From assembly GCA_002269645.1 (NCBI GenBank), contig NIVC01000043.1:109086-173085 (forward strand): 64,000 nucleotides of DNA, read 5' to 3'. The notes under the pieces are model-generated. The model saw only the letters and a list, made by a program, of their open reading frames with translations, had not been told where the DNA came from and did not search any database. Positions 7,780 to 57,699 of this stretch are shown here, one piece after another (position 1 is the first letter of the stretch; every line of letters begins with the position of its first letter). Source of the DNA: Macrostomum lignano (taxonomy: Eukaryota). A program made the position numbers and the translations under genes.

Positions 7780-8319
7780 CCTTTATTGCTATTAGTAATA
7801 TGTTAAGTTTTAGTCGCTAAGAAGCTGCGGGATTCAAGAAGGTAAGAGTAAAGTCATTGTAGAATTTTTACAATGGGCACCGGCCCTTGTGAATTTAATA
7901 AAATCGCTGAATAAAAAAACACAGCAGAGATTCCAAAAAACCATTGGCAAAAAACAAAGGATTTTTGTTTTTTTGCGCCAATATGTATTTCACTGCGAAT
8001 GCACAAAAAGATCTTAAAGGCTTCCTCGCTTTAATTTAAGAGAAATTACACAGATACAATGCGTTGAACTACCGAAAGACACTGCAATGAGAAACTCTAA
8101 ACAGATTATCAAAAATATGCTTTTTAGGGCACAGGGAAAATATAAAATCATAACAGAAATGCTTCTCTAAAGAACTAACAGTTATACTGTATGGTTAGTC
8201 AGTCTAGTGCAAAGCATTATGAAGATAAACACGATTCTATTAATAGACTTTTAACCAGATCACACTAAATACGAAGTACTTGACATGATTGCTATTCTTC
8301 AATAAGTATGTGCTATCAC

Positions 8320-9842: not shown

Positions 9843-9859
9843 GCGGTCCATTCCAAGCA

Positions 9860-12140
<2,281 letters not shown>

Positions 12141-13354: not shown

Positions 13355-13391
13355 TGCTGCCGGCTGTTGGCGCGGAGAGGGTGGCTACCTG

Positions 13392-14863: not shown

Positions 14864-17263
14864 AGGCGATTCTCATGGGTAGTTTAGGGGCGACTCTCAC
14901 GGGTAGTTTAGGGGCGACTCTCACGGGTAGTTTAGGGGCGACTCTCACAGGTAGTTTAGGGGCGACTCTCACAGGTAGTTAAGGAGCGACTCTCACGGGT
15001 AGTTTAGGGGCGACTCTCACAGGTAGTTAAGGAGCGACTCTCACGGGTAGTTTAGGGGCGACTCTCACGGGTAGTTTAGGGGCGACTCTCACGGGTAGTT
15101 TAGGGGCGACTCTCACGGGTAGTTTAGTGGCGATTCTCACGGGTAGTTCAGGGGCGACTCTCACGGGTAGTTTAGGGGCGACTCTCACGGGTAGTTTAGG
15201 GGCGACTCTCACAGGTAGTTAAGGAGCGACTCTCACGGGTATTTTAGTGGCGATTCTCATGGGCAGTTTAGGGGCGACTCTCACGGGTAGTTTAGGGGCG
15301 GGCGATTCTCATGGGCAGTTTAGGGGCGACTCTCACGGGTAGTTTAGGGGCGACTCTCACGGGTAGTTTAGGGGCGACTCTCACAGGTAGTTAAGGAGCG
15401 ACTCTCACGGGTATTTTAGTGGCGATTCTCATGGGCAGTTTAGGGGCGATTCTCACGGGTAGTTTAGGGGCGGGCGATTCTCATGGGCAGTTTAGGGGCG
15501 ACTCTCACGGGTAGTTTAGGGGCGACTCTCACGGGTAGTTTAGGGACGATTCTCACGGGTAGTTTAGGGACGATTCTCACGGGTAGTTTAGGGGCGATTC
15601 TCATGGGCAGTTTAGGGGCGACTCTCACGGGTAGTTTAGGGGCGATTCTCACGGGTAGTTTAGTGGCGATTCTCACGGGTAGTTTAGGGGCGATTCTCAC
15701 GGGTAGTTTAGGGGCGATTCTCACAGGTAGTTTAGGGGCGATTCTCACGGGTAGTATAGTGGCGATTCTCATGGGCAGTTTAGTGGCGATTCTCACGGGT
15801 AGTTCAGGGGCGATTCTCACAGGTAGTTTAGGGGCGACTCTCACGGGTAGTTTAGGGGCGACTCTCACGGGTAGTTTAGGGGCGACTCTCACAGGTAGTT
15901 AAGGAGCGACTCTCACGGGTATTTTAGTGGCGATTCTCATGGGCAGTTTAGGGGCGATTCTCACGGGTAGTTTAGGGGCGGGCGATTCTCATGGGCAGTT
16001 TAGGGGCGACTCTCACGGGTAGTTTAGGGGCGACTCTCACGGGTAGTTTAGGGACGATTCTCACGGGTAGTTTAGGGACGATTCTCACGGGTAGTTTAGG
16101 GGCGATTCTCATGGGCAGTTTAGGGGCGACTCTCACGGGTAGTTTAGGGGCGATTCTCACGGGTAGTTTAGTGGCGATTCTCACGGGTAGTTTAGGGGCG
16201 ATTCTCACGGGTAGTTTAGGGGCGATTCTCACAGGTAGTTTAGGGGCGATTCTCACGGGTAGTATAGTGGCGATTCTCATGGGCAGTTTAGTGGCGATTC
16301 TCACGGGTAGTTCAGGGGCGATTCTCACAGGTAGTTTAGGGGCGACTCTCACGGGTAGTTTAGGGGCGACTCTCACGGGTAGTTTAGGGACGATTCTCAC
16401 GGGTAGTTTAGGGACGATTCTCACGGGTAGTTTAGGGGCGATTCTCATGGGCAGTTTAGTGGCGATTCTCATGGGCAGTTTAGGGGCGATTCTCACGGGT
16501 AGTTTAGGGGCGGGCGATTCTCATGGGCAGTTTAGGGGCGACTCTCACGGGTAGTTTAGGGGCGACTCTCACGGGTAGTTTAGGGACGATTCTCACGGGT
16601 AGTTTAGGGACGATTCTCACGGGTAGTTTAGGGGCGATTCTCATGGGCAGTTTAGGGGCGACTCTCACGGGTAGTTTAGGGGCGATTCTCACGGGTAGTT
16701 TAGTGGCGATTCTCACGGGTAGTTTAGGGGCGATTCTCACGGGTAGTTTAGGGGCGATTCTCACAGGTAGTTTAGGGGCGATTCTCACGGGTAGTATAGT
16801 GGCGATTCTCATGGGCAGTTTAGTGGCGATTCTCACGGGTAGTTCAGGGGCGATTCTCACAGGTAGTTTAGGGGCGACTCTCACGGGTAGTTTAGGGGCG
16901 ACTCTCACGGGTAGTTTAGGGACGATTCTCACGGGTAGTTTAGGGACGATTCTCACGGGTAGTTTAGGGGCGATTCTCATGGGCAGTTTAGGGGCGACTC
17001 TCACGGGTAGTTTAGGGGCGATTCTCACGGGTAGTTTAGTGGCGATTCTCACGGGTAGTTTAGGGGCGATTCTCACGGGTAGTTTAGGGGCGATTCTCAC
17101 AGGTAGTTTAGGGGCGATTCTCACGGGTAGTATAGTGGCGATTCTCATGGGCAGTTTAGTGGCGATTCTCACGGGTAGTTCAGGGGCGATTCTCACAGGT
17201 AGTTTAGGGGCGACTCTCACGGGTAGTTTAGGGGCGACTCTCACGGGTAGTTTAGGGGCGATT
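14864..17263. repeat. 24-bp satellite with ~0.5-kb higher-order repeats
   Basis: Unit GGGGCGA(C/T)TCTCACGGGTAGTTTA. The marker variant GGGGCGGGCGATTCTCATGGGC recurs at 508- and 532-bp spacing. Confidence 0.95.
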
Positions 17264-17356
17264 TTATCAACTAGTGGTGGATACAGTACTCATAGTTAGC
17301 AAATTTAGAAGAGGTTTATTACTGTAAAAGAATTCGACAAGTCAATACGGTAGCAC

Positions 17357-28600: not shown

Positions 28601-31600
28601 GAGAAGAGTGGAGAGAAGAGAAGAGGAAAAAGGAGGAGAAGAAAGAAAAGAGAGAAAAGAGAGAAGATGGGAGAGGACGGGAAAGAAGAGAGAAGAGACA
28701 CAACCCTTAAGCCTTCAGAATTGCGATTGAATTGCTATTGTAAAGTTTTAAAGGACCCGACGGCCGATATAGAAAGGTCTTGCAGGTCACCTGAATGTCC
28801 CAATATTAGTGAAAATGTCCACCAAAAAGCATAGAACACAGGCAGACAGACTAAAATATTAAGCATTTACTACCTGTAATAATGGGTTCTGTGCTTTAAA
28901 GTGAGCACAATATAGGCGTATTAATGAAGGCTGCAGACACTGTCACAATTGTATAGTCTTATAGCCTTAGTAAGTAACGCCAATTTAAATACTTTGAGTC
29001 AGTCAGACACTCTTATGAATCAATTAGTCAGGCAACAATGAATGCGCAAGTCAGACAGGCATGAATGAATCCGTCAGACAGTCATGAATGAATCCGTCAG
29101 ACAGTCATGAATGAATCCGTCAATCAGTCATGAATGAATCCGTCAGACAGTCATGAATGAATCCGTCAGACAGTCATGAATGAATCCGTCAGACAGTCAT
29201 GAATGAATCCGTCAGACAGTCATGAATAAACCAGTCAGACAGGCATGAATGAATCCGTCAGACAGTCATGAATAAACCAGTCAGACAGTCATGAATAAAC
29301 CAGTCAGACAGGCATGAATGAATCCGTCAGACAGTCATGAATAAACCGGTCAGACAGTCATGAATAAACCGGTCAGACAGTCATGAATGAATCCGTCAGA
29401 CAGTCATGAATAAACCGGTCAGACAGTCATGAATTAATCCGTCAGACAGTCATGAATAAACCAGTCAGACAGGCATGAATGAATCCGTCACAGTCATGAA
29501 TAAACCGGTCAGAGAGTCATGAATTAATCCGTCAGACAGTCATGAATAAACCAGTCAGACAGGCATGAATGAATCCGTCAGACAGTAATGAATAAACCGG
29601 TCAGACAGTCATGAATGAATCCGTCAGACAGTCATGAATAAACCGGTCAGACAGTCATGAATTAATCCGTCAGACAGTCATGAATAAACCGGTCAGACAG
29701 TCATGAATGAATCCGTCAGACAGTAATGAATTAATCCGTCAGACAGTCATGAATAAACCAGTCAGACAGGCATGAATGTGTCAGATAGTTAGTTATGTGT
29801 ATGGCTTGGCTAGGTCTCTCAGTTATTATTATTTGTTTATTTTTTAGTTCTAGTGCACATTTGCCACCCCAGTGTCGGGGGGGGGGGGGTTTGGAGTTGG
29901 TTATTTACTCTCTCTCTCTCTGTGTGTTGTTCAGTCACCCACCCCTAATCTGTCTGTGCTGAGTCAGTAAATCAATATAAATAAATACAACACCGCGCGT
30001 GGAGAGTTCCACGTGTCCTTCCTTTTCTACTTCTAACTACAATCACTCGGCTCATAACTTCACATTGGCGACGAGAAAATGGCTACAACTGGTAGAATTC
30101 CAGAACTCTCTGCAAACTCTGACATTGAGGTATACCTAGAGAGGCTCGAACAATTTTTCATCTGTAAAGAAGTCCGAGACGAGGCGAAGGTCGCCACGCT
30201 GGTGACCGCCATCGGAGAAGACGCTTACAAGGTTCTTCGGAATCTGTGCCTGCCGGAAACGGTGACCTCCAAGTCATACTCAGACTTAGCTGCGGTCTTG
30301 AGGGCACATTACTCTCCCAAGACGTCAACGTTATCCGCCAGATTCCGCTTTCAACAGCGCGTGCAGAAGCCCGGCGAGAGTCTCGCGGACTTTATTGCTG
30401 GCCTAAAGGCTGCCTCGGAGCATTGCAAATTTGAGTTCACTCTGGACGGGTCAGACGGATCCCACTGCATCAGCACTCTGGACGAGAGACTGCGCGACCA
30501 GTTTGTCTTCGGTCTCCGCAGTGACGTGCACCGTGCAAAGCTGCTGGAGATCGAACAGCCCGACTTCAAGACGCTCGTGGCCAGAGTCAACGCATTGGAG
30601 GCAGCGGAGAAGTCGTCGTCGGAGATGGCGCACCGTGCTGAAGCAGTCGCCCACCTGCGTCTCCACAAGAAGCCCGCTGCGCCCAAAGAGCTCAACAAAT
30701 TCAACAAGCAGGCTCCCCGGCAGCCGCCCGGAGCTCAAGCCATCGCTATGCGGGCAGCTGCTGCCTCAGGCGCGTGTGCAAGCTGCGGCGGCGCCCACAG
30801 TCGGCAGCAGTGCAAGCTTCGTGAGGCCAAGTGCCATAACTGCGGCAAAGTCGGGCACATCCGCAAGGTGTGCAGGTCTTCAAAGCTGCACAAGCTGGAC
30901 CCAGAGCCGGCTGAGCTGCAGGAGCCCCTCTTCAGCATTAGGCAGAGCGGATCGAGCAAGGGTCTGGCGGTCGAGCTGCTGCTCCAAGGCAAGCCATGTC
31001 GCTTCGAGGTGGATACCGGCTCCGCCCTCACCGTCATCCCGAAGAGTCTCCAAGAGGATGTCCTGCCGGGTCTCCATCTGTCGCCGACATCCACGGTGCT
31101 GCGCACCTACACGGGCGAGAGCTTTCGACCCATCGGACAGGCAGAGGTCGCGGTTCAGCATAATGGCCAAGATCGGCGGTTGACGCTGCTTGTGGTCGAG
31201 CAAGGCGATGTCGCACTATTGGGTCGCGACTGGCTGACGCAGCTGAGATTGGACTGGCCGACGATCCTTGGTCAGGTCAACTCAGTGACCGGACAAGCAG
31301 CTGATCTGCTCGCGCAGTTCCCCGAGGTCTTCCAAGGCGGCCTTGGCACCTATCGGCACGGCGAGGTGAAACTGCACATGCCGACTGAGGCGAAGCCGCG
31401 CTTTTTCAAGGCCAGACCGGTCCCCTATGCACTCCGGGAGCGCGTCGATCAGGAACTTCGACGGATGGAGACTGACGGCATCATCACGCCAGTCAAACAT
31501 TCCGACTGGGCTGCGCCAATTGTGCCTGTTGTCAAGAAGGACGGTTCGGTGAGGATCTGCGGCGACTACAAGCTCACCTACAACGCAGAGTCCAGGCCGG

Positions 31601-34600
31601 AGCTGTACCCACTGCCGCGCATTGAGGACTTATTTGCAAAGCTGGGTGGCGGCTGCAAATGGTCCAAGCTGGACATGTCAAACGCCTTCCTGCAGCTGCC
31701 ATTGTCTGAGGACAGCAAGCCCTTCTTGACCATCAACACGCAGCGAGGCCTGTACCAGCTGAACCGCATGCCGTTCGGCATCAACTGCGCCAGTGCGGTA
31801 TTCCAGCGCACTCTAGACTCGCTGCTCGGTGACCTAGAGTCTGTGCAAGTCTTTGTGGACGACATCCTGGTGACGGACAAGACGCTGCAGCATCATTGCG
31901 AGAATCTTATCAAGGTCCTTCAGCGCCTACGGGAGGAGGGCCTACGGCTGAACAAAGACAAGTGCGAGTTGTTCCGCGATTCGGTCGAGTATCTGGGCCA
32001 CCGGATCGACAGCAACGGGCTGCGGCCGCTGACAGAGAAGGTGAAGGCGGTGCAGAACGCCCCGCCACCCCCAGACTGCAGTCAACTCCGAGCTTATTTG
32101 GGCATGTTGACGCACTACGGCAAATTTCTGCCTCATCTGTCCACGGTGATCGCTCCCCTGAATCAGCTGCTGACTAAGAACGCGCGCTGGACGTGGGGGG
32201 AGCCTCAGCAGATAGCCTTCGAGAAGTCCAAGCGTCTTCTGCTCGAGTCTCCGGTGCTGATGCATTATGACGCCAAGCTGCCGCTGCGGCTAGAGTGCGA
32301 CGCCAGCCCCTATGGTCTCGGCGTGGTGCTGACGCACCGAGTGGACGGCCAGGACCGAGCCATTGCCTTCGCCAGTCGCAGCCTGACGACGGCTCAAAAG
32401 GGCTACTCGCAGTTAGACAAGGAGGCGCTAGCGATCGTGTTCGGCCTCCAGCGCTTCAATCAGTTCCTCCAAGGCCACAAGTTCGTCATCGTGACCGACC
32501 ACAAGCCGCTCCTGCTCCTGCTCTGTGATCGATTCCAGAGCACGCGGCGGCTCGCATGCAGCGCTGGGCGATCCGTTTGGCCGGTTACGACTACTCGCTG
32601 GAGTTCCGGCCCACCAGCAAGCACGCCAACTGCGACTCTGTCCCGGCTGCCATTGCCGAGGCAGTTTGAGGAAGAGCCGGCCGTCAACGCCCTGCTACTG
32701 GATGAGGAGACCGGGTCCGCCATAACGGCTCAGGCGGTCGCGCGCAGCACTCGCTCGGATGCCATTCTCGGCCGGGTGCTTCGCTGTCTGCAGACTGGCG
32801 CGCCAATGGCTGGCGCCGATCTCATCGACTTCTCGAGGCGCCAGGACGAGCTGAGCGTTGAACAGGGCTGCGTGCTGTGGGGCGCCCGCGTCGTGGTGCC
32901 CGCGGTTCTGCGACAAGGCGTGCTGGACGAGCTGCACCAGGCGCATCCCGGCATCAACCGCATGCGAGCGCTAGCCCGCAGCTACGTCTGGTGGCCCGGC
33001 CTGGACGAGCAGCTTGCGTTGACCGTCAAGTCATGCCGGACCTGCATGCTGAACCAGGCTGACCCGCCCAAGGCGCCGGTGCAACCGTGGCCGTTTCCTG
33101 CTGAACCTTGGGCGAGGCTGCACCTGGACTTCGCCGGCCCCGTTAACGGTCGCACGTACCTGGTCATCGTGGACGCCTTCAGCAAGTGGCCGGAGGTTCA
33201 TCAGGTGCACAGCGTTACGTCTGCTGCCACCATCGAGCGACTCCGCGAGGTCTTCGCCAGACTGGGCATTCCCGGGTGTTGGTCTCCGACAACGGCACGC
33301 AGTTCACCTCCGCGGAGTTCGGCGAGTTCACAAGGCGCAACGACATTCGGCATGTTTTCTCGGCGCCGTTCCATCCGGCAACGAACGGCCAAGCGGAGAG
33401 GTTCGTTCAGGTGCTCAAGCGACATCTGCTCAAGAGCGGGCACTCGACGGCGGCACTGCAGCAGATGCTGCTGTCCTACCGCAACACGCCGCACTCGATC
33501 ACCGGCGAAGCTCCCAGCCAGCTGCTCATCGGCCGCAGACTGCGCAGTCGGCTGGACCTGCTGATGCCATCGCTGACGAGCAGCATGCAGCAGCACCAAG
33601 AGCGGCAGGTCGAGCAGCAGCCGCATGCGCGCGAGTTTCAAGTCGGCGACCGAGTTCTACTGCGCGACTTCAGCTCCAACGCTAGGGCTGGCGGCGGCAC
33701 CCGCTGGGCGGCGGGCAGCGTCGTGTCCGCTGGATCCCGCAACTGTGACGTTGAGGTCGGCGGTGCTCTCCATCGGCGGCACACGGACCAGCTGCTGACG
33801 AGCTCGCTGCCAGAGGCCGACCCGGTGACGCCGGCCGCTGTCTCCGATGAACCGCATTCGCTGCCCACTGAGCAAAGCGAAGGCGACGGCGGCAATGACG
33901 CGCCGCAGGATGACGCGGCCACCGCCGCCGCTGACCGGCCGAGCAGTCCGGCGAGGCGCTACCCGCAGCGTCGGAGGCAGCCACCTGAACGCCTGCAACT
34001 TTGATCCTGAATTTGAACTGACTCTGACTTCGAACGAACTTTGCTAGGGGATGTTTCGAACTTTAGGGGGGAGATGTCAGATAGTTAGTTATGTGTATGG
34101 CTTGGCTAGGTCTCTCAGTTAGTTATTATTATTTGTTTATTTTTTAGTTCTAGTGCACTTTTGCCACCCCAGTGTCGGGGGGGGGGTTTGGAGTTGGTTA
34201 TTTACTCTCTCTCTCTCTGTGTGTGTTGTTCAGTCACCCACCCCTAATCTCTGTCTGTGCTGAGTCAGTAAATCAATATAAATAAATACAACACCGCGCG
34301 TGGAGAGTTCCACGTGTCCTTCCTTTTCTACTTCTAACTACAATCACTCGGCTCATAACTTCACAGAATGAATCCGTCAGACAGTCATGAATAAACCGGT
34401 CAGACAGCCATGAACTACGCCAGTCAGTCACCTGATCTCCAGACTGCGGTCTCGAGTCGCGCCCCCGCCCTTCGACAAGGGTTTTCTTCCACAGGCGCTG
34501 ATTGCCCAGCACGTCGGTGTAGCCGTCATCCGGCGGCTGGACGGTTTCGCTCTGCAGGTCGGCACCGTCGCCCGCAGTGGGCAGCTCAGTCAGCACCGTT

Positions 34601-34617: not shown

Positions 34618-34867
34618 GGAAAACGCTCGATTAATTGTTCAATTAAATAAAGTTCAATCACAATATGAGAGTCAAGTTAGAACTCAGACTGCAGCCTGCG
34701 GATGTCGACTACAGCATGCATGAGTTTTAAATACGAAATTGTAGCATGAGAGAATCATCAAGCATTAGAATAGCAGTTGAATATTTAATTGACTTATTAA
34801 TTTTTGATACATAACTGTCAGCTGATGGACTCTGTACAGAGGAACGCATATCTGTACTGTACACAAA

Positions 34868-35083
34868 GAAAGACAGACAGACAGACAGACAGACAAGACA
34901 CAGATAGACAAACAGACAAGACACAGATAGACAAACAGACAAGACACAGATAGACAAACAGACAAGACACAGATAGACAGACAGACAAGACACAGATAGA
35001 CAGACAGACAAGACACAGATAGACAAACAGACAAGACACAGACAGACAAACAGACAAGACACAGACAGACAAACAGACAAGAC

Positions 35084-35126
<43 letters not shown>

Positions 35127-35291
35127 AGACACCGATAGACAAACAGACAAGACACAGATAGACAAACAGACAAGACACAGACAGACAAACAGACAAGACA
35201 CAGACAGACAAACAGACAAGACACAGATAGACAAACAGACAAGACACAGATAGACAAACAGACAAGACACAGATAGACAAACAGACAAGAC

Positions 35292-35334
<43 letters not shown>

Positions 35335-35499
35335 AGACACCGATAGACAAACAGACAAGACACAGATAGACAAACAGACAAGACACAGATAGACAAACAG
35401 ACAAGACACAGATAGACAAACAGACAAGACACAGACAGACAAACAGACAAGACACAGACAGACAAACAGACAAGACACAGATAGACAAACAGACAAGAC

Positions 35500-35567
<68 letters not shown>

Positions 35568-35776
35568 GACACCGATAGACAAACAGACAAGACACAGATA
35601 GACAAACAGACAAGACACAGACAGACAGACAGACAAACAGACAAGACACAGATAGACAAACAGACAAGACACAGATAGACAAACAGACAAGACACAGACA
35701 GACAGATAGACAAACAGACAAGACACCGATAGACAAACAGACAAGACACAGATAGACAAACAGACAAGACACAGAC

Positions 35777-35838
<62 letters not shown>

Positions 35839-36045
35839 CACCGATAGACAAACAGACAAGACACAGATAGACAAACAGACAAGACACAGACAGACAAACA
35901 GACAAGACACCGATAGACAAACAGACAAGACACAGATAGACAAACAGACAAGACACAGACAGACAGACAGACATACAAACAGACAGACAGACAGACAGAC
36001 ATACAAACAGACAGACAGACAGACACAGACAGACAGAGAAACGGC
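34868..36045. repeat. AGAC-derived compound microsatellite with a 23-bp unit
   Basis: Unit AGACAAGACACAGATAGACAAAC interleaved with (AGAC)n. Confidence 0.95.
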
Positions 36046-37194
36046 ATGAAACAAATAAAACGTAAGCCGGACTGCTAGAGACAAATTAACGCACCTACAA
36101 CAAACTATGAGCCACAAAAAGCCACAAAAAGAAGCAAGAATCTAAACAAGAACTGAGTAGCACAAAGATGGCATTCTACGGGAAAATTGTGTATTTTTGT
36201 AAAAAAAAAAGCAAAAAAGCATCAACTAATACTGATCGAAGAGTGCGGAATTCAAACATCAAATGAGATTAAAATGAAACTACAGAACAATAAAAAAGTC
36301 GCTACAAAAAATCAAATGAAGACTAATATATTTGCATTCGCTAGACTTCGCAATACTGAAGTTGAAAATTCGCCTTACATACTACTAACAGCTGCGCTGA
36401 AAATCTGAGAGAACATGCAAGGATTGTTTTGTGAGATTAAAAATCAGCTCATTATAAAATAGCAGAAGAAATACGATTGTAAATATGGAAAACAAGATGA
36501 ATAATAAATTCAAAGCACCGTGCAACAAATTTCTCTTATGGATTGAGTGTAAATACTACTGCTATGAAGTAGGAGGAAAAAATATGGCACACCATTTTTA
36601 ATATACTCGTAAAACAAATTTAATCACAATTTCTTGAACGAAAAGAAAATTCGTAATTAAAAACTTTTTAAAAATCAAATCACCTTGATCTCTAATTAGT
36701 ATGTCAGTGTGGAAACTTTTATGATATTGCAAACTCCAATCAAATATTTGATTAATCAATCCATCAATGTACCCGTGTTGATATCTACTCGTACTTATCT
36801 ATCCATTATATCTGATCTCTATCAATACATTAATACGTCAAAGTATCAAGATATCAACGTATCAAGCTATCAATTCATCAGTCTATCAAGCTATCAATCT
36901 ATCAAGTTATAAATCTAACAGGGTAGAATTCTAATATCTATTAAGCTATATAAATATATCTATAGCTGGATGTTCTGTCTTTTTAAACACACATCTGAAA
37001 TCAGAACAAAAATAAAAATCAACCACCTCATTAAAGAAGTACATGTTATATCGCAATAAAAGCAATCAGCTATAATACTAGGATTAAAAACGTGCTAAAT
37101 CAAAAGCCAGCGCAACTAGCTATGAAGCTAAAAATGGTATTGTTTATCGCTGCGCGCTCAGCAATATTAAATGAAAGCGCGCACGGAACGCGAT

Positions 37195-37668: not shown

Positions 37669-37774
37669 ATTGTTGCTTTTATTGCTGCTGTTAGAACATG
37701 CATATAAGTGCATTTGTAATGGTAACTTAGCTTGGTAGTGCAGAGATTAGTAAAGGTGTTTTAATTAGGATTTG

Positions 37775-38610
37775 GCTGTCCATGGGATCACTGAGAATTC
37801 TGGCATTGGGTGTCCATGAGATCACTGAGGATTCTGGCATTGGGTGTCCATGGGATCACTGAGGATTCTGATGATCTAGCATTGGGTGTCCATGGGATCA
37901 CTGAGGATTCTGGCATTGGGTGTCCATGGGATCACTGAGGATTCTGATGATCTAGCATTGGGTGTCCATGGGATCACTGAGGATTCTGGCATTGGGTGTC
38001 CATGGGATTCTGAGGATTCTGACATTGGGTGTCCATGGGATCCTGAGGATTCTGGCATTGGGTGTCCATGGGATCCTGAGGATTCTGGCATTGGGTGTCC
38101 ATGGGATCCTGAGGATTCTGGCATTGGGTGTCCATGGGATCACTGAGGATTCTGGCATTGGGTGTCCATGGGATCCTGAGGATTCTGGCATTGGGTGTCC
38201 ATGGGATCACTGAGGATTCTGGCATTGGGTGTCCATGGGATCCTGAGGATTCTGGCATTGGGTGTCCATGGGATCCTGAGGATTCTGGCATTGGGTGTCC
38301 ATGGGATCCTGAGGATTCTGGCATTGGGTGTCCATGGGATCACTGAGGATTCTGGCATTGGGTGTCCATGGGATCACTGAGGATTCTGATGATCTAACAT
38401 TGGGTGTCCATGGGATCACTGAGGATTCTGGCATTGGGTGTCCATGGGATCACTGAGAATTCTGGCATTGGGTGTCCATGGGATCCCTGAGGATTCTGGC
38501 ATTGGGTGTCCATGGGATCCCTGAGGATTCTGGCATTGGGTGTCCTTGGGATCACTGAGGATTCTGAGGATTTTGGCATCAGGTGTCCATGGATCACTGA
38601 TGGTTCTGGA
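37775..38610. repeat. 33/34-bp tandem repeat
   Basis: Unit GGATTCTGGCATTGGGTGTCCATGGGATC(C/AC)TGA. Confidence 0.95.
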
Positions 38611-39854
38611 TTAGTCAAAACACAAGAGGATGAAGGTTGCTATGGAAACACTACTGAAAGTAGAAAATAAATTCAACACAAATAAGTGATACTTTTTCAG
38701 CGCAGAAGCAAGCGCGCAATACTCGGGAAAAACAGTTTTATTAATGAAATTGTTGAAACCAAGCTAAAGCAGTGATATTTTCAAATTCGCGACTCTCGAA
38801 ATTACAGAAAAATTATTACAGGTAAAACCGTTGCCTAATGTAAAACCATTATTTAACAACAGCTGTAAAAGGATTCAATTTAAAAGAAACCAAAAGCCAA
38901 GTTAAATTTGATTACAGTCCACAAAACAGATTGCCTGTGACCATAGCCGCATTAGTACTGTATAAACTAATTACCAAAATTATACTTATTTAATCCTTTA
39001 TAATTACTTAATAAAATAACATTGATAAGCGAGGACTGGTTAGAATTTATATAATTTTACTGAAACGAAAACTATACTTAATTATTTAAAATAATTAACA
39101 ATTAAGGAAGGCAAGGAAAAAAACAAAGGAAAAAGAGAATCATAGAAACATGACGATTCCAAAAAGCGCAGAAAGGCAGTTTTCAATAATCAATTTTAAA
39201 AGCATTACGCTCGTAATTACGATTGCAACAATCTAGGCATACTACTTGTTTACTATATAGAGCGGATAATAAGTAGTTCAGGCGCGAATTAATTACTATT
39301 TTTGCTTTGTTTCATTTCACAGAAAAAAACTTGTTTTAAACATATTGACAATTGTTCTGGTAAACATTGAACAGATACCAAAGCAACAATTAGGCACATT
39401 GATTCAATTTCATATTTAGTGCTTCAGCAGGTGCAAGCGGTGAAGTGTTCAGCATAAAAGGCAAAAACCGATGGTTTAGAAAAAAATGAATGCCATGCAT
39501 AATAACAATACTATTTGGCAAAAATTTAAAATATTCTTTCCAATTTATGATTGTAATAACTGTCTGAAATATGAGTCTGTAAAATTAACGATTGTTTAAT
39601 TATTAATTAGATGTAATTACTGAATTGCTAGATATACCACTCAAAATAGTAGTTGTAAAAAGCAAAGCATCTACTCTTTTTCAGGAGTTTGTCTGTGCAA
39701 TGTCACAAATTGAATGTGGCAGCTAAATTTCGTTTTCCTTCCTCGGGTATTACGGCCTCAGGAGTCAGGAGTCCATGTGGTTAAGAATGAACAACAAGCA
39801 TTTCTTGTGTACTCAAAGTACAAAAGTGAACGGAAGACGGACAAAACTCAGAAT

Positions 39855-42859: not shown

Positions 42860-43708
42860 TGAAACAGTGGTGTAAGCCCATCCTTATGATCTGAAACAGT
42901 GGTGTAAGCCCATCCTTATGATCTGAAACAGTGGTGTAAGCCCATCCTTATGATCTGAAACAGTGGTGTAAGCCCATCCTTATGATCTGAAACAGTGGTG
43001 TAAGCCCATCCTTATGATCTGAAACGGGACGTAAGCCCATCCTTATGATCTGAAACGGGACGTAAGCCCATCCTTATGATCTGAAACGGGACGTAAGCCC
43101 ATCCTTATGATCTGAAACGGGACGTAAGCCCATCCTTGTGATCTGAAACGGGACGTAAGCCCATCCTTATGATCTGAAACGGGACGTAAGCCCATCCTTA
43201 TGATCTGAAACGGGACGTAAGCCCATCCTTATGATCTGAAACGGGACGTAAGCCCATCCTTATGATCTGAAACGGGACGTAAGCCCATCCTTATGATCTG
43301 AAACGGGACGTAAGCCCATCCTTATGATCTGAAACGGGACGTAAGCCCATCCTTATGATCTGAAACGGGACGTAAGCCCATCCTTATGATCTGAAACGGG
43401 GTGTAAGCCCATCCTTATGGTCTGAAACGGGACTTAAGCCCATCCTTATGATCTGAAACGGGGTGTAAGCCCATCCTTATGGTCTGAAACGGGACTTAAG
43501 CCCATCCTTATGATCTGAAACGGGGTGTAAGCCCATCCTTATGGTCTGAAACGGGACTTAAGCCCATCCTTATGATCTGAAACGGGGTGTAAGCCCATCC
43601 TTATGATCTGAAACAGTGGTGTAAGCCCATCCTTATGATCTGAAACGGGGTGTAAGCCCATCCTTATGGTCTGAAACGGGACTTAAGCCCATCCTTATGA
43701 TCTGAAAA
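42860..43708. repeat. 31-bp tandem repeat
   Basis: Unit CTGAAACGGGACGTAAGCCCATCCTTATGAT, with block-wise variants (AGTGGTG, GGGGTG). Confidence 0.96.
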
Positions 43709-48057: not shown

Positions 48058-51000
48058 TGTTGGTGCGGAATAGAATTATTTAATAAACTGTTTAACGGGT
48101 TCAATGGCTGATCCAATTTTACCATGCAAACAGTTTTAAGGGATTTTATATTAATTTGATGCATTAATCTACTTCACTTTTCTTTGCACACAAACACCAT
48201 TTTGACACCAAACTGTAGAAGTGCAAGTCATAGTCTGGAAACCTAGTCTACAATAATTAGATTCTAAAACAACAATAGCACAACGCTTTTTAGTTCATTT
48301 AAATATTAACTAAAATATTTATTTAGAATTATCATTTAGAAAGTTAGATATTTCTTTTTATGATTGGCATTGGAATTCTTTACCCTAAATAGAAGCTGAG
48401 GAATAACATTATTTTTGTGATAAAAACCCTGCAGGAATGTAACAATAAGAGTGATTCCTTGTCGAAGTTCTATATATTTGCTATAAAAATGCCAAATAGA
48501 ATCAACAAATGGAGTATTTTTTGCTTAAACAGACCAATATAAAAATATGATATGCAACTCATAAAGACTTAATCCTACAAAAAAAGTTAACAATTTATAG
48601 ATAATAAATACTCCAACAATTAAAAAGAAACAAAACATTATTAGGATCATATGCACAACCTTTAGATCTTCACCAAGCCAAGGTGAACAGTTTTCCATAA
48701 AAGTGCAATATACTTGTATCTGTAGCCTTTTGCAACATAAGCTTTACTCAAAATGCAATCCAAATCCTTTATTTCTGTGGCTTTAATTATTTAATGTTCT
48801 TTCTTTCTTTTTTTTTCTATCATTTATTAAAATGTTTTCCCTTTTCTTATATTTTTATATGATTTCTTCCTCCTTTATTTGCTTCACTTTCAATCTTTTG
48901 TCTACTCCTATAATTTAATAAATGAAGATAGAGCAAAGATATGCACAGAGCATATACATGAAGTTAAAATCACAAAAATACTATGTGGAACAAAAGTATA
49001 TACCTATCATTCTTGCATACCAGACCCAACAGTTTTTATATTACTAAAATTTTCCTATTGATTGCTATTCTATGAAAATTAAGATAAAGGGTGGCTTAAA
49101 ATTGAAAAATTAAAAAATTCTAAAGTATGGTTTCTTTGATAGATAGATAGATAATATCTAAAACATTTGGGAACTATGAGCTTTTTAAAAAAGGTAAAGA
49201 CATTTTTGCTAAAAGTCAATGCTAATTTAAAAACAAAGCTAGCTACGAGCATGTTTATGAAAAGCCAAACTAGTTTTACTATATTTAATCATTATAAGTG
49301 AATTTTGTTTTGGTTAAAAAAGTTTAGAAACATACAAGTATAATAATAGATATGTTAGATATAATAAAGTAGCAAAATTTATATGTGTAGCTGCTAATCA
49401 ACCTAGCCAATCTTGACAAAATTGTAGAATTGTGGGAGACCAAGATATGTAGGTCAAAACTGATAGCCAAAATTGAAAGAGGCAAGCTAGCAAAGAAACA
49501 AAAAGAAAAAAGTAATATAAAATAGTAAATGGAATCTAAGAAAATAAAAAAGAAAAAAAGTTGTGAAAGAACCAACAAAGTTATACTAAGGATTAGTTCA
49601 TTTATTAATTGGACATAATTAATATAAACTTAAAGGTTATGCATTTGTAAGTATATCTAGCAAATGTCTAGATAAAAGCTTGGCCTATTTCATAGATACC
49701 TAGTTCATTTTAACCTTATAATATAGCACAATAAAAATTTATTTTTGATAATGCTTAACTAGATTTTTATTGGCTATTAGTAATATACAGATTATTTAGT
49801 TGAATTTTTAAACAAGGCCTTAGATTTGGAATAATATAAGAATCTAATCCTAATATCTTATCCTAAGATAAGAAGAATAAGATAAGACCCCTTTTTAGTG
49901 GAACATTACCACAAGCCCTAAGAATATTTTGTTGATAGTCATTATAACCTATATACTATAAATGTTTCAATTATACTTTCAAATAATATTTTGAAAAACT
50001 CATTGCATTTTAATGTTTATTTATAAATAAATATAAATATATCACTCCAAATTGGCCAAACAAGTAAGAATATTTTGCAAAAGCCAATTCTTTTATTACC
50101 ATTACCAATACTAGGCCTACTAGCTACTATTATATAGTAGCATTATAAATATCATATTACAAAAAAGCTTTAAGTTATATTTATTATATAAGGCTATAAA
50201 ATATACCAATATACTTGTTTATACATATTTAATAAATAACCAACCCAGTTAGTCAAGCTAATAACAATGTTAATAGTAATAATAGTCCAAATATAAAATT
50301 TATAGCTTTTTTATTATTTTTGACAATTTGGATCAATAGGTCTAATAAATTGAAAACCTTTAACCTAAAAATCATTTAATACAGTGTAAATATTTATATA
50401 ATGTATTTATATAATATGTTCTATATATATAATGAGAATTATATAATATTAAAATAGGGTACTGTCATTTAAACTTTATTTTTAGGCGCCCTTTAACCCC
50501 TTGAGCTCTAAGCTTAACTAGCAACACAGTTGCTTTCAAATACAAGTTGAAAGATTAAAATAAAAGTTTTACTTTTGTTTTTAAATAGGCCAGGCAGCTG
50601 GCTGGCTATATTTCTAGAACCAATCTAAATCACATTTTCTCGTCAAAAACAATTATATATATATATATATATATATATAAATATGTGTATATTTTTATAT
50701 GTAGAGATTAGCAATCTAATGCCTCCCTTTGGGATGTGCAATAAGCAATGAGCAAAAATTATTGATGCAATTCCATTATAAAGCACATTTTTGTAAGAAC
50801 CAATTCCTTCTTCAGTTTTACAAATCACCTTATTTGAGTAAAATTGTTATAGACAAATGTGTTTGCTAAGAATCTCTTTTTTTGCTAAGAATGCAAATGC
50901 CCCCTCTCCCTGTCTGCAATCTCTTTATTTCTAGCCTAAATTGGCTAGGGTGGGTAGGGTCTGGACTTTACAATGGTATGATCTTGCAAGGCTAGTTGAA

Positions 51001-51518
51001 CTGCCAGGGCCAACCCCTCTCAAGGTTATCTGTGACTTATTGTTTTTCACACTTAAACAATTAGTGATTTAGTTAGTTATTTAGTATATGGATTTATCTA
51101 GTTTATCTGGACTTGTTATTGTTTACTTTATTTTCTCTTCTTCTCTATCTAGTTTAGTCTTATTATTCTTTTTTTCTCTCTGTACCTACCTTCTGATTGG
51201 CTCTATAATCTCACCAATCTTCTCAGTTGCACATTCTACTATACCTCCTAATTCTTACTTGTAATCAACCACAACTGGTTTTGATTCAACCTCCCTAGGG
51301 CTAGCTTGATTTAATCTACTTACCTAACATAATGCTCTTGCCCTTTCTCTCTAAGTCTATTAGCATAAGCATAACCCCTCAACCTTACATGGCTTAGCCC
51401 CAACCATCCAGCCACTGCTGTCATTTTCTCTTGCTTAGCTCCATTTGTCCACCTCAGCCTATATGGCTAATCCCTACCTGTCCATTATATGACAGGGCCA
51501 ATAGGGTTAGGCTAGCAC

Positions 51519-51784
51519 CATACATGTGCAACCCCCCTGATTTACACTGGCCATGCGACTTACTTTTTGACCAAAAATGCAACTTACCTGTAAAAGAAAC
51601 CTTAATGCAATTTTGGGTAAACGGCAGGAGTAACTATTACTGTCTTATTAGGGCTAAATGCCTTGTCATCTAATTAGTACTCCATCTGTATTCTTTAGGT
51701 TGGGCATTTTTGCGACTTACCACTGGTCTACCACAATTTACGGTGGCCAGATTGGCCAGGTCGGCCAGCAGTTGCGCATGTATG
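51519..51784. mobile_element. Non-autonomous hAT-type MITE (copy 1)
   Basis: TIRs CATACATGTGCAAC and GTTGCGCATGTATG. 8-bp TSD GCTAGCAC at 51511-51518 and 51785-51792. Homologous to 55681-55978 in inverted orientation. Confidence 0.85.
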
Positions 51785-53554
51785 GCTAGCACCAATCTAC
51801 CCTAGAAAATTTTGCTATATATTGTAGATTCTTACTCTATGCCAACTTAAGATATTAAACTACCACATTTCTATTATTAACTAGATTTAAAAAAATGCTT
51901 GCAAATCAATATATTAAAAATGGTTTATATCTGTGTGCATATGTGTATGATCAATTTAAAAAATGGCTCAATGGATTTTCTTATAACTTGCACTGTTTGA
52001 TCAGTTTGACTGTTTGATAGCTTGCAAATCGATATAACTAAATCAAATCCACTCAAGTTCTAAATGAAATTCATAATTGTCCAGTATTGCCATGGCAATC
52101 AGTGCCACCGGCGCCATCCCTAGAAATGTAAGTATGATATACATTGTTAGTTACTACTTTATCATTTAATACCCTCCTAAAATTTGTTTTCTGTTTCTTC
52201 TTGACTTCTTGACTCCAAGAAGTTAACAAACCAAGCATATATTCTTAGGCAATGGTATTCTTCGGAACCAGAATCTCTCTTTTATTTGGGGCTTGTTACT
52301 TTATTATTTTAGTCTAGGCATTTTAATACATTGTTGGTTACTATTTTATCATTTAATCCCCCCTAGAATTTTTTCTTTTTTCTCAACTCTTAGAAACAAA
52401 AACCAATTGTACATATGTTATTCTAAGGAATCAAAATCTCATTTTAATTCCAGGCTTACATACTAATCAAATATGCTTCTGTAGAATTTTAAAATTAACA
52501 ATTTAACTATCTTTGCTTAATTTTATAGCTATAGCGTGCTACTTCTGCAGGGATCAGAAGCATAAAGCTGTAAAGCAACACAGTGCAATGCACTCAAACA
52601 ATATGTGGCATATCAGCAGCAACAGCAGCAGAAATAGCAGGAACAACAGCAAAAGCAACAGCAATAATAGCAACGAGACAATGGCGGCAAAAAGATTACT
52701 AACTAACTATTTTACAAACATTACTACTAATATCTACTTTACTTTACTAATGACATCTTTACTATTAAATGTTAACAACAAATTTAAAAAAAAATAAATC
52801 GGACCTAATTGGACCTTGATTTAAAAAAATCACTGCTTTGAACTTTGCTAAACAGAGTATGCATTATCTTAGGAGTTTACTCATCAAGAGCAATAATCAT
52901 TTACTCATCAAATGAAACAAAACAATTTTGCAAAAAATGCAGCAAGGTATTGAATCTACAATGTAATCACTATTAAATAATTTAATTTAGTTTCAGTTTT
53001 TAAGTGGCCTTGGCCCAGCCATTGAGCCATAGTTAGGCTACTATTACTATTACCACTACTAGCTTTTTCATTTGAATTAATATAGAAAGGTGCAGTCATT
53101 TGGTGGAAACTAATAGAACAAATAAAATTAAATCTTACTACATGCACTTAAAGTAAAACAATGCAACCTGCAATTACCAAGTTGATCATGCATACAAACA
53201 TGTACATTTAAAGTAATCTAACTAACAAAAAGATCAGAATGGTGGAGAATAAATATATAATAAAAATTTTCTACTTGAAATTTATACAAAGCAACTTTTT
53301 TAAATGCTTTAGAGTCCCAAATTAGGGAGATAAGAGAGCAGTCTCCTGTAAAGATCTTTCTCTCTTTTCTCTGTAAAACTGCTTATAAAATGGTTAAGGT
53401 AGCTTTTTATAATAGGAAAATCTAATCTTATAATCAATGCAAATGTACAAAACATTGCAAGTGCAAGCTTCTTGAAGTCAGTAGCATTGGATTCAGTCAG
53501 TCTACTATTAGTCTCAATTATTACAAGTTTTTATAAGGTTTAACAAGCTCAATA

Positions 53555-53700
53555 ATCATTCGTTTATCAAGCATAGTTATCCTAGTTTATTAAATGCAGT
53601 ACTCCTTGGTTTATTAAGTGCAATAATCTTTAATTTATCAAGCACACTAATCCTTTGTTTATCAAGTGCAATAATCATTTGGCTTATCAAATGCAGTAAT
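53555..53700. repeat. Decayed ~24-bp tandem repeat
   Basis: Recurring TTTAT(C/T)AA(G/A)(T/C)GCA(A/G)TAATC units. Confidence 0.6.
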
Positions 53701-55124
53701 CCACTTTCAATAAAAAATTATATTACTTTTATGTACATATATATAATCTAGAAAAAATTCTGATTGTATACATGGTAGCCAGATGGCAAGATGCTCAAGT
53801 GCCAAACATTTCAATACTAAGACAATTCAATGCTTTGAACTTCTAAGATAATTAGTACCAGAGCCATAGTCTATATCATGCTAGGTATACACCCAAACAA
53901 AAATTGAATAATTACAAATTCAGACTGAAAAAAATTGAGTGTATGCCAATTTTTAAAACTATGCCAGTATTGCAACAATTAATGACATTTTTATACTGTG
54001 GCAATAAATGACCTTTTTTGATGATAATATTGATAGTGGAAAATTGATACATGCAAAGATTAAATATTTTATTAAAGTTTATGCTTTAAATAAACCCTTG
54101 TGGTAGTGCAAACTCCCACTGAAGTTTTATTATTTTAAATTTTCTAATCACATATTATGGACTAACAGTGGACTTTCTCATTTTGCTATTGCCCCATTTG
54201 CAGCCCTATCTGCCTACCCTGTGGCACAGTTCTATGATATATTTTTCAGTCCCCATTCTGGCCTACCTGCCCCTTTTTGGCCTTGCATGTCCCTTTTTCT
54301 GTTTCTATTCTTTTCTCTCAGTATTTTCTATAGAAACTTTTGCTTGACAAGTTCTGGACCCAGTGTCTATGCCCTATCCCCATTTTCTGAACCACTTTGC
54401 CTAACTGCTCCCCCTTTTTATATTTATTTGGCCTCATTTGGCCCAATTCTGAAAAGCTCTTTTTCTTTTTCCTGCTTTCTTCTACTATTTTTTCAAATTT
54501 TGCTTAACTTTACTAGTGCTCCATGGAGTAGACCCTAATACACTAATTGCGACTAGCTAATTTCTTTGCTTAGAATCATCTGATCTTTAACTTAGAGCCT
54601 CACATAGTGGCTTCCATGGCATCATTTATCGTCAAGTCAACCTAAACATACCAACTGTGCACGCCTACTTTTGTTGGTATACAAGGTCAATACATGCTCC
54701 AAAGTATGGTACTAGAGCAAATAGAAGCAAAGCTAAAGGGAAAATAAAAGGTTATAATATGAAAGCTAAAATGTTATAGAATTCTAAGTTTTTTTCCTTA
54801 ACCAATAATATAGTTTTGTTGGAGTTTGACTTTAGATTTCAAAATTCATGCAAAAATAGTTCTGGCAAATTTATTGGAATTCAGGGGGTTTAAAATCTAT
54901 AGGTTAAAAATCTATACAATGATAGCTAGGTTTCAATAGATTGTAAAAAATAAATATCAAATGAAAACTATTTGCCTTTATTAGGCCTTATCTTATATGT
55001 ATCTTTTTAGTACTAGGGCCTATTATTATTAAGAAGCCAATTTATAATAGTCTTTGTCTTTAAATTTTAAGTGTATAATAAATATATGTATAATAAATAT
55101 ACTAGCTACTCAATGATAACAATA

Positions 55125-56234
55125 GGCAGTTGTTATTTGTCCGGTGACCAGACGAATAGCGATATGGTTATTTGTCCGGTTACTGGATCCTGACCATGCT
55201 TTTCTATTCATCCAGTTAAATTGATAATGCTAAAATATCTAGTTCATAAAAACCACAAGGGTAAATATTCTTAGACTTTAAAGACTTCTTACTTGTATCT
55301 TGACTATTATATTGTTATACTAGTGTGTGTTTTATACACCAAATTATGATGTATGAAACATTTGCCGACACTTATTCAGACACTTCTATAGACACTTTAG
55401 TTTCTGTTGTATGAATCATAGGAACAAGCATTAAATTTGTTTATTCCTAACAAACTATCAGTAAACTGCTTTATTGTAAGCTTTTTTGCTTTATTTTATT
55501 AAATATGAATCATGAAATTTGTTATTTTGCATAGATTCTTTTCATGTGAAGAAGAATGTTAAATTTGTCCAGGACACTTCCTAATTCATATTTAATAAAA
55601 TAAAGCAAAAAAGCTTAAAATAAAGCAGTTTACTGATAGTTTGTTAGGAATAAACAAATTTAATGCTTGTTCCTACAATTCATACATGCGCAACAGTCGG
55701 CCGAGTCGGCCGATCCGGCCGACCGATTTGGCGGCCAATCAAGGAAGTCGCAAAAATGCCCACCCAAAAAATAACCTGAAGAGTAGTACTAAGTAGCTGA
55801 CGAGGCATTTTAGCTTAATAAAACAGTCATAGTTACTCCTGCCGTTTACCCAAAGTTGCATTAATTTTGCTTTCAGGTTTTTTTATATGTAAGTCGCATT
55901 TTTGGCCAAAAACTATGTCGCATTTTTGTTAAAACTAAGTCGCACGGCTGACCGAATTTTGGAGGTTGCACATGTATGCTACAATTCATACGACAGAAAC
56001 TAAAGTGTCTATAGAAGTGTCTGAATAAGTGTCGGTGAATGTTTAATACGTCAAATTATGCCGAATTGAATAATATACTGCTTTGCTTAACACTCTAATA
56101 TACAAGAAAATATTAATCAGTATACGAGAATAGGTCTATTCATCACGAAACAAATAAGATACTTGTGTTAGCAATTTAACCGGACAAATAGCAAAAAGGC
56201 TATTCGTCTGGTCACCAGACAAATAACAACTGCC
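55125..56234. mobile_element. Mutator-like non-autonomous foldback element
   Basis: TIR GGCAGTTGTTATTTGTC(C/T)GGTGACCAGACGAATAGC. 9-bp TSD ATAACAATA at 55116-55124 and 56235-56243. Internal ~170-bp inverted arms at 55341-55510 and 55584-56057. Confidence 0.82.
55681..55978. mobile_element. hAT-type MITE (copy 2) nested in the right arm of the foldback element
   Basis: Same TIRs as copy 1. 8-bp TSD CTACAATT at 55673-55680 and 55979-55986. Confidence 0.88.
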
Positions 56235-56272
56235 ATAACAATATTGGGTATATCATCATGAGGCCTAGTAGT

Positions 56273-56668
56273 ATTTTTTTATTTTTTTATTAGAGGCAGG
56301 GGGTTATGTGTACCCTCGCACACTTTAAGAGACATAGGCACACAAGCAGTGAGAGGCATTACTGCCTATTCCACTGACTCCCCTGAGCAGGCATATAAGC
56401 GCGCGGATACGTACGCAGGCACACACTCACACAGGAGTATATAGCAGCCCTAACTTTATATTATCATTAGGCATGTATATTTCACTATACCTTGGCGGGT
56501 TGGCCCTCCCTCAAGGCTGTTAGGCTTAATTGCACAAGCAGAGCCAAGCCGAGATTCCAATTTAGCCCCAAATTATTATGACTACACTTGGAATTGAGCC
56601 TGAGTTGCTGCCCTCTTGCTGGCACACCAGAGCAGCTGTGCTAGGCCTATTGCTGGGCTATGGCCCCC
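56273..56668 (-). mobile_element. tRNA-headed SINE (copy B), hypermutated relative to copy A
   Basis: The reverse complement aligns along 10801-11157, for example TCTCGGCTTGGCTCTGCT, CTGCGTACGTATCCGCGCGCTTA, GGCAGTAATGCCTCTC and the poly-A tail. Confidence 0.8.
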
Positions 56669-57699
56669 TTGGCCTAGTTAGTATATCATCAGGTAACCAA
56701 ATTTGTTAACAATAATAATGCATGGTAAAATACACTGAATTTGTCAATGACAATAGAGTTGAAGAATTAGATGTTGACAAATTTGATAGCACCTAGGACC
56801 TAGGGGGCCTATGCTAGTAAAGGTCTAAATATATATTCATGATTAAGCCCTATGAATAGGTCTAAAAACACATAATTGTGATTATTACTAATATGTGATG
56901 ATCACTTAACTAGGCCTAAAAATATCATTAACCAATAACAGTATTTTCACTTATAATTATTATAAGTGCTGTGTCATGCCTGTGCTGTGGGCTGTGTAGG
57001 CCCTATTTCTACTTCTAATATGGCATTGGGTTGGGTTGTTGTTTGTTGCTTAGAAAGCTTGGCTGTTTGGGAAAGCTTTGCCCCCCCCCTCCTCAAAATA
57101 GTTCCAGGTCCGCCCTTGGTTAAATGACTATGGCCTATTGGGTACCTTTGTCGCACAACATTCAATTTTACTTTCAAGGGCACTAGGGCAGCATTTGATG
57201 TGATTTCATTTGATGTATGATTTATGAATTCGGTTATCAGTTGAGGCGCTTGTTGGTAGGCTTACCAAGTTTAGGAATTTTTACTAGCTAATCATTACGC
57301 CATTTAAGACTTGATAGTTAAACTTCGTCGTAATGTTGATCTCAAATCGTGAGTCACAGAAGACAAAAATTTTGAATTCAAAAAACGACAGTATATTTAT
57401 CTACCTATGTAACAAGACTCGGGCTTTATTAAAATGCTAAGTTTTTATTTATTTTTATAATATTTTAAAGGCTTGAAGAAAATTGAATTACGAAAATTTG
57501 TTTTTTTACAAACGCGTGAATTGGCCGACGTTTCCCTCATCTTCAAAAAGCCCAGTTAATTTTTTAACAACTCAGTATATCTTTTATGTACGGATCTGTG
57601 CTAATCTGAAATTAGATACTTACGCATTTCGTAACTGAGCAAGAATAAATATTCGATGGTGTCGAATTAGTGAAGAAATTTTATGTACATGTATATATC

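Follow-up and report, generated by a model that had tools for sequence, protein, structure and literature searches.

Regional, probably methylation-driven C-to-T decay of an old SINE-like copy in a CpG desert of the Macrostomum lignano genome

Whether an animal genome can mutate its repeats in the manner of RIP, the repeat-induced point mutation of fungi, is the question raised by two copies of a short interspersed nuclear element (SINE)-like retroposon in a 64,000-nucleotide stretch of DNA, hereafter the window, which is the terminal 64 kb of contig NIVC01000043.1 (assembly GCA_002269645.1). Copy A lies at 10788..11164 on the plus strand, as delimited by nhmmer, and copy B at 56274..56670 on the minus strand; coordinates are window positions unless a contig is named. 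The original prediction, made from the letters of the window and placing the copies at 10801-11157 and 56273-56668, held that copy B had undergone RIP-like CpA>TpA hypermutation, and that the genome possesses a domain-restricted C>T defence acting on CpA as well as CpG. It had taken the genome to be that of an animal, and this is correct: the window belongs to the free-living flatworm Macrostomum lignano, which rules out a fungal source in which RIP would be trivial, and the joined translations of two minus-strand open reading frames (ORFs) encoding Sec7 and PH domains are 100% identical to M. lignano BOX15_Mlig014986g1. Finding a defence of the RIP type in an animal would be very surprising, and the evidence presented here does not support one. 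Our analysis points to a process of a known kind, a methylation-type decay that affects a transposon copy lying in a CpG-depleted domain, together with an unexplained, moderate CpA component. On balance we favor regional C>T decay of an old copy B resident in a CpG desert, probably driven by 5-methylcytosine (5mC), with no repeat-recognising defence involved. The sample comprises one locus, three SINE-like copies, the third of which is known as protein alone, and approximately 100 homeolog differences within the desert.

The two copies were compared by global alignment over the coordinates of the original prediction, with changes counted from A to B. The alignment covers 346 positions at 83% identity and contains 58 substitutions, along with 13 indels that measure 1-9 nt. 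Of the substitutions, 27 are C>T or G>A changes, of which 12 fall at CpG, 12 at CpA/TpG, 2 at CpC and 1 at CpT. The roughly ten CpG and roughly ten CpA/TpG differences estimated earlier by hand are thus counted as 12 and 12, and each of the example changes then quoted was found in the alignment. The accompanying statement that there are few other substitutions does not hold, as 31 of the 58 belong to other classes (10 reverse transitions and 21 transversions), and the 13 indels come in addition. Expressed per available site, C>T changes occurred at 12/55 CpA, 12/42 CpG and 3/83 CpC+CpT positions, and the difference between CpA and CpC+CpT is significant (odds ratio 7.4, Fisher p=0.0013). Transitions are asymmetric in the A-to-B direction (27 vs 10, p=0.008), and a polarity-free measure derived from the same counts gives a CpA enrichment of approximately 2.5-fold (YpA 14/88 vs YpC+YpT 10/159). 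Copy B contains 34 TpA dinucleotides and copy A 17. The observation of RIP-like changes in copy B is therefore partly confirmed.

The direction of these changes, which the original prediction had assumed, could be examined with a third copy of the element. A search of the second antisense frame of copy A against protein representatives recovered UniProt A0A1I8HYD0, an M. lignano gene model with a carboxylesterase domain that carries the element as a read-through tail of about 95 residues (residues ~142-238), read from the antisense strand and with a flank and deletions of its own; the tail is either an exonisation or an annotation read-through. Polarity was determined by codon-aware comparison of in-frame segments only, which covers 5 of the 12 CpA-class sites. 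The third copy has the A state at all five of these (10949, 10958, 10992, 11045 and 11074), at three of four informative CpG sites (10853, 11068 and 11091) and at the only CpC site that is informative (10845), and it has the B state at the remaining CpG site, 11101, where parallel decay is possible. It thus sides with A at 9 of 10 informative transition sites, indicating that B is the copy in which the C>T changes are derived. At informative transversions it shows the reverse, sharing the B state at four of five (10804, 10889, 10931 and 11052), so copy A has derived changes of its own. Where the third copy allowed testing, the TA state that would have made A the derived copy was not found, and the CpA>TpA excess in copy B is real and of the right polarity.

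The age of these changes is indicated by two further contigs, L001 and L002, which have the gene order of the window at 94-99% identity and are homeologous or allelic to it. The segment L001 2098-2276 is the homeolog of the 3' half of copy B and is 93% identical to it; nearly all B states are already present there, so the changes in B are old. An exception is site 10992, whose B state is not in the L001 homeolog, and this CpA>TpA change must therefore have taken place after the homeolog split and after integration. The L001 copy of B is broken off at the equivalent of window position 56442 and is preceded by more than 2 kb of unrelated DNA (L001 1-2097; GC 0.39, CpG observed/expected ratio (o/e) 0.70); this break marks either the insertion of other DNA into the SINE copy or a rearrangement there.

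Copies A and B reside in very different surroundings. Copy B lies in an AT-rich, sharply bounded CpG desert of approximately 8.5 kb (48501..57000) that is split by a younger insertion. The larger part of the desert, 48,501-55,124, has a GC content of 0.30 and 21 CpG against 251 GpC dinucleotides (CpG o/e 0.14), and consecutive 500-bp windows within it contain 0, 1, 0, 1, 1, 0, 6, 4, 4, 0, 1, 0 and 3 CpGs. The smaller part, 56,235-57,000, includes B and has a CpG o/e of 0.25. Immediately outside, CpG o/e is 1.0-1.5 in the 500-bp windows at 47.5-48.5 kb and about 1 past 57 kb, and the left edge of the desert lies at most ~450 bp from the 5' end of an enkurin-like gene (48,057). Copy A and the DNA flanking it have a GC content of 0.52-0.65 and a CpG o/e of 0.8-0.97. 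The copies themselves follow their surroundings: A has a GC content of 0.535 and 23 CpGs (o/e 0.91), and the 397-bp B has a GC content of 0.479 and 8 CpGs (o/e 0.35). The earlier suggestion of a domain-restricted process is thus borne out as regards CpG, and the locus displays both CpG depletion with sharp edges and an excess of CpG>TpG/CpA changes polarised toward the resident copy B, as expected of 5mC decay.

Repeats of different ages within the desert bear on how the depletion arises. The insertion that splits it is a non-autonomous element of 1,110 bp (55125..56234) with terminal inverted repeats of ~58 nt (GGCAGTTGTTATTTGTCCGG...), internal foldback arms and a 9-bp duplication (ATAACAATA), located 28 bp from the tail-side target-site duplication of B. 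It is not in L001, which has an empty site at 2290-2310, and its CpG o/e is 0.95, indicating that it is recent and younger than the desert. That a young element in this position still has a normal CpG content shows that CpG loss in the desert depends on residence time. Nested in this element is a younger, CpG-rich copy of a repeat family of ~300 bp that resembles miniature inverted-repeat transposable elements (MITEs) (55680..55978, plus strand; termini CATACATG...CATGTATG). An older MITE-like copy lies in the desert at 51553..51784 on the minus strand, and its unique changes include CpG loss at 5/18 sites and no CpA excess (1/21). A further member occupies L002 2653-2950, inside a 3.3-kb L002-specific insertion at window position 50337.

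Unique DNA of the desert was surveyed in a three-way alignment of the window, L001 and L002, in which lineage-specific differences were counted where neighbouring positions were invariant and no gaps were nearby. In the desert, C>T changes per site and lineage were found at 3/39 CpG, 21/1182 CpA, 12/1239 CpT and 2/576 CpC positions; the CpG value compares with about 1% for other C, and CpA exceeds CpC+CpT with an odds ratio of 2.3 (p=0.015), for which polarity is partly unsafe, since L001, which serves as outgroup there, carries 74 of the 106 desert events, and their direction is insecure. Outside the desert (34-48 kb) the corresponding counts are CpG 14/2364, CpA 23/3915, CpC 16/2394 and CpT 13/3516. 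The CpG rate there equals that of the other contexts, so CpG hypermutability is limited to the desert, and the same count shows no CpA excess. These counts point to a region that is mostly unmethylated in the germline, with the sparse 5mC of the species perhaps concentrated in blocks such as this one. For the two safely polarised lineages within the desert, CpA again exceeds CpC+CpT (9/788 vs 4/1210, odds ratio 3.5, p=0.04), and under a strict local-tree filter, which leaves 11 desert events and is too sparse for firm statistics, the counts are 4/444 vs 1/712 (p=0.07). When the window and L001 are compared without polarity at 4,782 desert sites, transition frequencies are 2.8% at YpA, 2.0% at YpT, 2.2% at YpG and 1.2% at YpC, a YpA excess with an odds ratio of 1.5 (p=0.05). 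C>T changes are about three times as frequent per site as T>C changes, revealing an AT-biased background.

Dinucleotide composition places an upper limit on any CpA effect. The 48,501-55,124 segment has a TpA/ApT of 1.04 and a (CpA+TpG)/(ApC+GpT) index of 1.35, and copy B has values of 1.21 and 1.64. A simulation in which CpG mutates ten times faster and CpA is unboosted arrives near the observed desert, with a GC content of 0.30, a CpG o/e of 0.21, a TpA/ApT of 0.99 and an index of 1.18. Raising CpA threefold or sixfold brings the simulated index down to 0.83 or 0.58, far from the observed 1.35. Under this model, composition excludes a sustained CpA effect of RIP grade and is compatible with an effect of at most 2-fold, to which it is insensitive because the index is already ~1.3 in other non-coding M. 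lignano DNA (TpA/ApT 0.7-0.88). Taken together, the idea of a CpA-directed process keeps its support from the SINE pair and from desert odds ratios of 1.5-3.5, and it is weakened by the borderline significance of the latter and by the single change among 21 CpA sites in the older MITE-like copy. We judge the chance that a genuine CpA bias of at least 2-fold operates in the desert to be slightly better than even.

These results are best accommodated by a history in which A and B would be old, independently inserted members of one M. lignano SINE-like family. Copy B would have inserted into the AT-rich intergenic domain and aged there, losing C to T far faster than sequences elsewhere, overwhelmingly at CpG and moderately at CpA (roughly 2-4 fold over CpC/CpT), with the AT-biased background acting on top of the CpG decay. 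Copy A would have inserted into GC-rich, CpG-normal DNA and kept its cytosines, its own changes consisting chiefly of transversions and deletions. As to mechanism, we consider it most likely that 5-methylcytosine deaminated spontaneously in a silent domain that is methylated in the germline, and the CpA component may reflect spill-over methylation of CpA by DNMT3, a sequence-context effect or, in part, sampling. The process would be regional, acting on resident DNA whether repeated or unique, and the changes in B would have accumulated in situ. According to reviews, M. lignano possesses both DNMT1 and DNMT3, and its overall 5mC is low and, as one of 2022 states, of unknown genomic pattern. The locus resembles 5mC-deamination decay in mosaically methylated animals in several respects: half of the CpG dinucleotides of B are gone and the losses are polarised to B, the desert is strongly CpG-depleted with a CpA+TpG excess over ApC+GpT that roughly matches what the lost CpGs would have contributed, CpG is hypermutable solely inside the domain, and the species has the two methyltransferases. 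It differs in that invertebrate mosaic methylation usually falls on gene bodies, whereas the domain here is AT-rich and intergenic beside CpG-normal genes, and in that the extra CpA>TpA component lies outside the classical picture.

Several observations weigh against this account. In the SINE pair the CpA rate approaches the CpG rate (22% vs 29%), which is far above the surrounding DNA and above what plain CpG decay would give. The TpA/ApT of the desert exceeds that of other non-coding DNA, and a CpG-only model leaves this unexplained. All three desert CpG>TpG events lie on the outgroup lineage, where their direction is assumed, and the changes in B could predate its insertion, having arisen in the source gene. 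A 23-bp block with five CpGs, AAGCGCGCGGATACGTACGCAGG (56397..56419), is intact in B and identical in A, despite the loss of 12 of 42 CpG cytosines in other parts of B. The L001 homeolog has lost one of the five, and the residues KRADTYA of the third copy fit retention of the block; its survival could be due to chance (about 3%) or could mean that this stretch of the element is protected or functional. Finally, the proposed methylation of the domain is read from CpG loss alone, and the whole account is drawn from one locus.

Among the alternatives, the one that survives best is that there is only CpG decay and general AT pressure, the CpA excess of the SINE pair being a small-sample or subfamily effect in which the TpA states of B came from a different source gene. 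The excess is made up of just 12 CpA events; in unpolarised form it is about 2.5-fold in the SINE and 1.5-fold in the flanks, and the strict local-tree filter takes it to p=0.07. The MITE-like family lacks it, the composition of the desert fits a CpG-only model, the 13 indels hint at possibly different masters for A and B, and the L001 homeolog shows that the states of B are old. This alternative has more difficulty with the agreement of three data sets (the SINE pair, the unpolarised desert comparison and the safe lineages) on the direction of the CpA excess, with the third copy siding with A at every testable CpA site, and with the absence of a CpA excess in the same count outside the desert. 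We regard it as possible but doubtful.

Non-CpG methylation is a sharper form of the explanation that we favor, in which DNMT3 methylates CpA and CpG across the domain and deamination of methylated CpA (mCpA) yields CpA>TpA changes. The activity of DNMT3 follows the order CpG > CpA > CpT > CpC, and this is the order of the C>T rates in the desert. A CpA excess is found only where CpG is hypermutable too, B is derived at the five informative CpA sites, and the TpA/ApT of the desert lies above that of other non-coding DNA. A CpA excess confined to DNA with CpG decay and the shared rate order would be explained by DNMT3 CpA methylation of the kind known from mammalian oocytes and neurons and reported for some flatworms. 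The locus is unlike these cases in having no CAC/CAG preference, either in the SINE pair or among the safely polarised desert changes. Beyond the SINE pair the statistics are thin (p=0.04-0.05), the MITE-like copy has a single CpA change in 21, and CpA/TpG is undepleted in the desert, so that a sustained effect of threefold or more clashes with composition under the simple model. To our knowledge, a germline mutational footprint of mCpA has not been established in animals. Among flatworms, reviews describe non-CpG as the dominant methylation context in Taenia solium, and they also report CpA-context methylation in Schistosoma, which is disputed. We consider domain-wide CpA methylation unlikely without being negligible, and slightly less likely still the broader proposition that the low 5mC of M. 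lignano is concentrated in AT-rich CpG deserts between genes, where CpA would be methylated along with CpG.

The defence proposed originally, in which a RID-like methyltransferase or a deaminase would recognise repeats and convert C to T at CpA and CpG, fares considerably worse, and we consider it very improbable. It can draw on the near-equal frequency of CpA>TpA and CpG loss in copy B, on the derived state of B at the informative CpA sites, and on the TpA/ApT of 1.21 in B. RIP is diagnosed by a TpA/ApT of at least 0.89 together with a (CpA+TpG)/(ApC+GpT) of at most 1.03 (PMC2621366), and RIP-affected fungal repeats have values of 0.27-0.74 for the latter (PMC2621366). When computed, the first index is passed by B and by the desert, but the window outside the desert already reaches 0.83-0.84; the second is failed by both (1.64 and 1.35), the target dinucleotides not being depleted. 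For CpA<->TpA dominance the value is 12/15 = 0.8, which PMC2621366 classes as "medium", with the CpG rate (12/42) at least as high. RIP hits both partners of a duplicate and has a lower length limit of ~400 bp (PMC2621366), whereas here copy A is untouched, its derived changes being mainly transversions, and the element at ~400 bp is at that limit. Changes of C:G to T:A would be overwhelming under RIP but make up less than half (27/58) of the substitutions. The process is not targeted to repeats: the unique flanks (48.5-55.1 kb, with few detectable repeats) are as CpG-poor as B and show the same polarised tendencies, the younger repeat 28 bp away is untouched, and the MITE-like family in the desert has no CpA excess. 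The locus does share with fungal RIP (RID, DIM-2) a C:G>T:A spectrum with a strong CpA share, elevated TpA and an AT-rich block beside GC-normal genes (cf. AT isochores), and it is set apart by the hit on one of two copies, the inclusion of unique DNA, the retention of CpA/TpG and a CpG effect as hard as that on CpA. M. lignano is moreover an animal, and a premeiotic stage of repeat scanning is not known for it. The methyltransferases named in reviews are DNMT1, DNMT2 and DNMT3 only. The terms "RIP-like" and "defence" are therefore not appropriate for a decay that is regional, and the original interpretation is partly supported overall.

A deaminase of the APOBEC/AID type is likewise not indicated, as the C>T and G>A changes on the sense strand of the element are balanced (13:14) and spread along it, the mutated C is preceded by T in 4 of 27 cases, and neither a TpC/WRC target motif nor strand-coordinated clusters were found. 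Editing at retrotransposition before B integrated, by APOBEC on complementary DNA or ADAR on RNA, would account for the C>T/G>A excess of B relative to A, but it would be strand- and motif-specific and is excluded by the strand symmetry and the missing TpC motif, and it also fails to explain a change (10992) that postdates integration and the CpG loss shared by the unique flanks.

The identity of the affected element as a SINE, as it had been labelled, is supported in most respects. It is non-coding and ~380-400 bp long, and has an A-rich tail, seen in copy A as GATAAAAAAAG (11147-11157, plus strand) and in copy B as a T-run on the plus strand (56274-56297). Copy B is bounded by a target-site duplication of 12-13 bp, GGCCTAGTAGTA on the tail side (56262..56273), which is also found beside the homeologous copy in L001, and GGCCTAGTTAGTA on the head side (56671..56683); the duplication of copy A is ambiguous, in low-complexity DNA. 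A-box-like and B-box-like motifs are present within the first 90 nt of the element, the box-like motifs of the heads including TAGCCCAGCAATAGG in B and GGCTCGATTCC in A. The latter, B-box-like, lies at 10848..10858 on the plus strand; its counterpart in B is GGCTCAATTCC (56590-56600, minus strand), which shows a CpG>CpA loss, and the third copy retains TCG at this site (10853). These features, the dispersed copies and the read-through of one of them are those of tRNA-derived SINEs. What does not fit is the head, in which ARAGORN found no tRNA in either copy and the Rfam tRNA model gave no match even at E<=10. Three copies were seen in total. An nhmmer profile of A and B found no further copies in the window, L001, L002 or L005; the members seen are the two within the 64 kb and the one that a gene model at another location carries, and a separate locus of 24 kb and the homeolog-specific DNA had none. 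When proteins were searched with the 115-aa open antisense frame of copy A, nothing matched, and exact 20-mer scans of genome and metagenome contigs returned chance matches in bacterial contigs only. Copy A sits between two long minus-strand ORFs, and an intronic location for it is plausible.

Other features of the window illustrate the variety of its repeats. The region 30079-34004 contains the pol of a Ty3/gypsy-type long terminal repeat retrotransposon, as a 1161-aa ORF and an overlapping 272-aa ORF for the integrase end in another frame, which implies at least one frameshift. The protein is 63% identical to M. lignano BOX15_Mlig026022g1, and a homologue search with pol returned a single M. 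lignano protein. In contrast to copy B, C>T decay was not seen in this region, which has a GC content of 0.58-0.65 and a CpG o/e of ~1. Long minisatellite arrays, recognised by periodic ORF translations and ladder-like BLAST hits, occupy 3260-4700, 8289-9884, 13367-14279, 15972-17299, 34727-36117, 37772-38612 and 42860-43707, and they explain several seemingly CpG-poor stretches that are not deserts. One array is the intron filler of a two-exon Rab32/38-like gene on the minus strand (exon 1 end 4526, exon 2 start 3243). Across 34200-56400 the window, L001 and L002 are related as a mosaic: L001 is nearest to the window at 34-48 kb (1.1% vs 1.8% divergence) and L002 at 48-53 kb (0.95% vs 2.5-2.9%). 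Such a pattern points to an exchange of sequence among the copies by recombination or gene conversion, or to a chimeric assembly.

The sharply bounded CpG desert beside CpG-normal genes predicts where the sparse 5mC of M. lignano would be located. The locus also makes a germline footprint of CpA methylation testable, by comparing context-specific C>T changes in deserts with those in the rest of the genome and by a single methylome. If both CpA and CpG are methylated in such deserts, the expected result would be a double footprint of CpG>TpG and CpA>TpA, an animal germline signature of non-CpG methylation. If true, this would represent a route to the inactivation of resident transposons that is regional rather than repeat-scanning.

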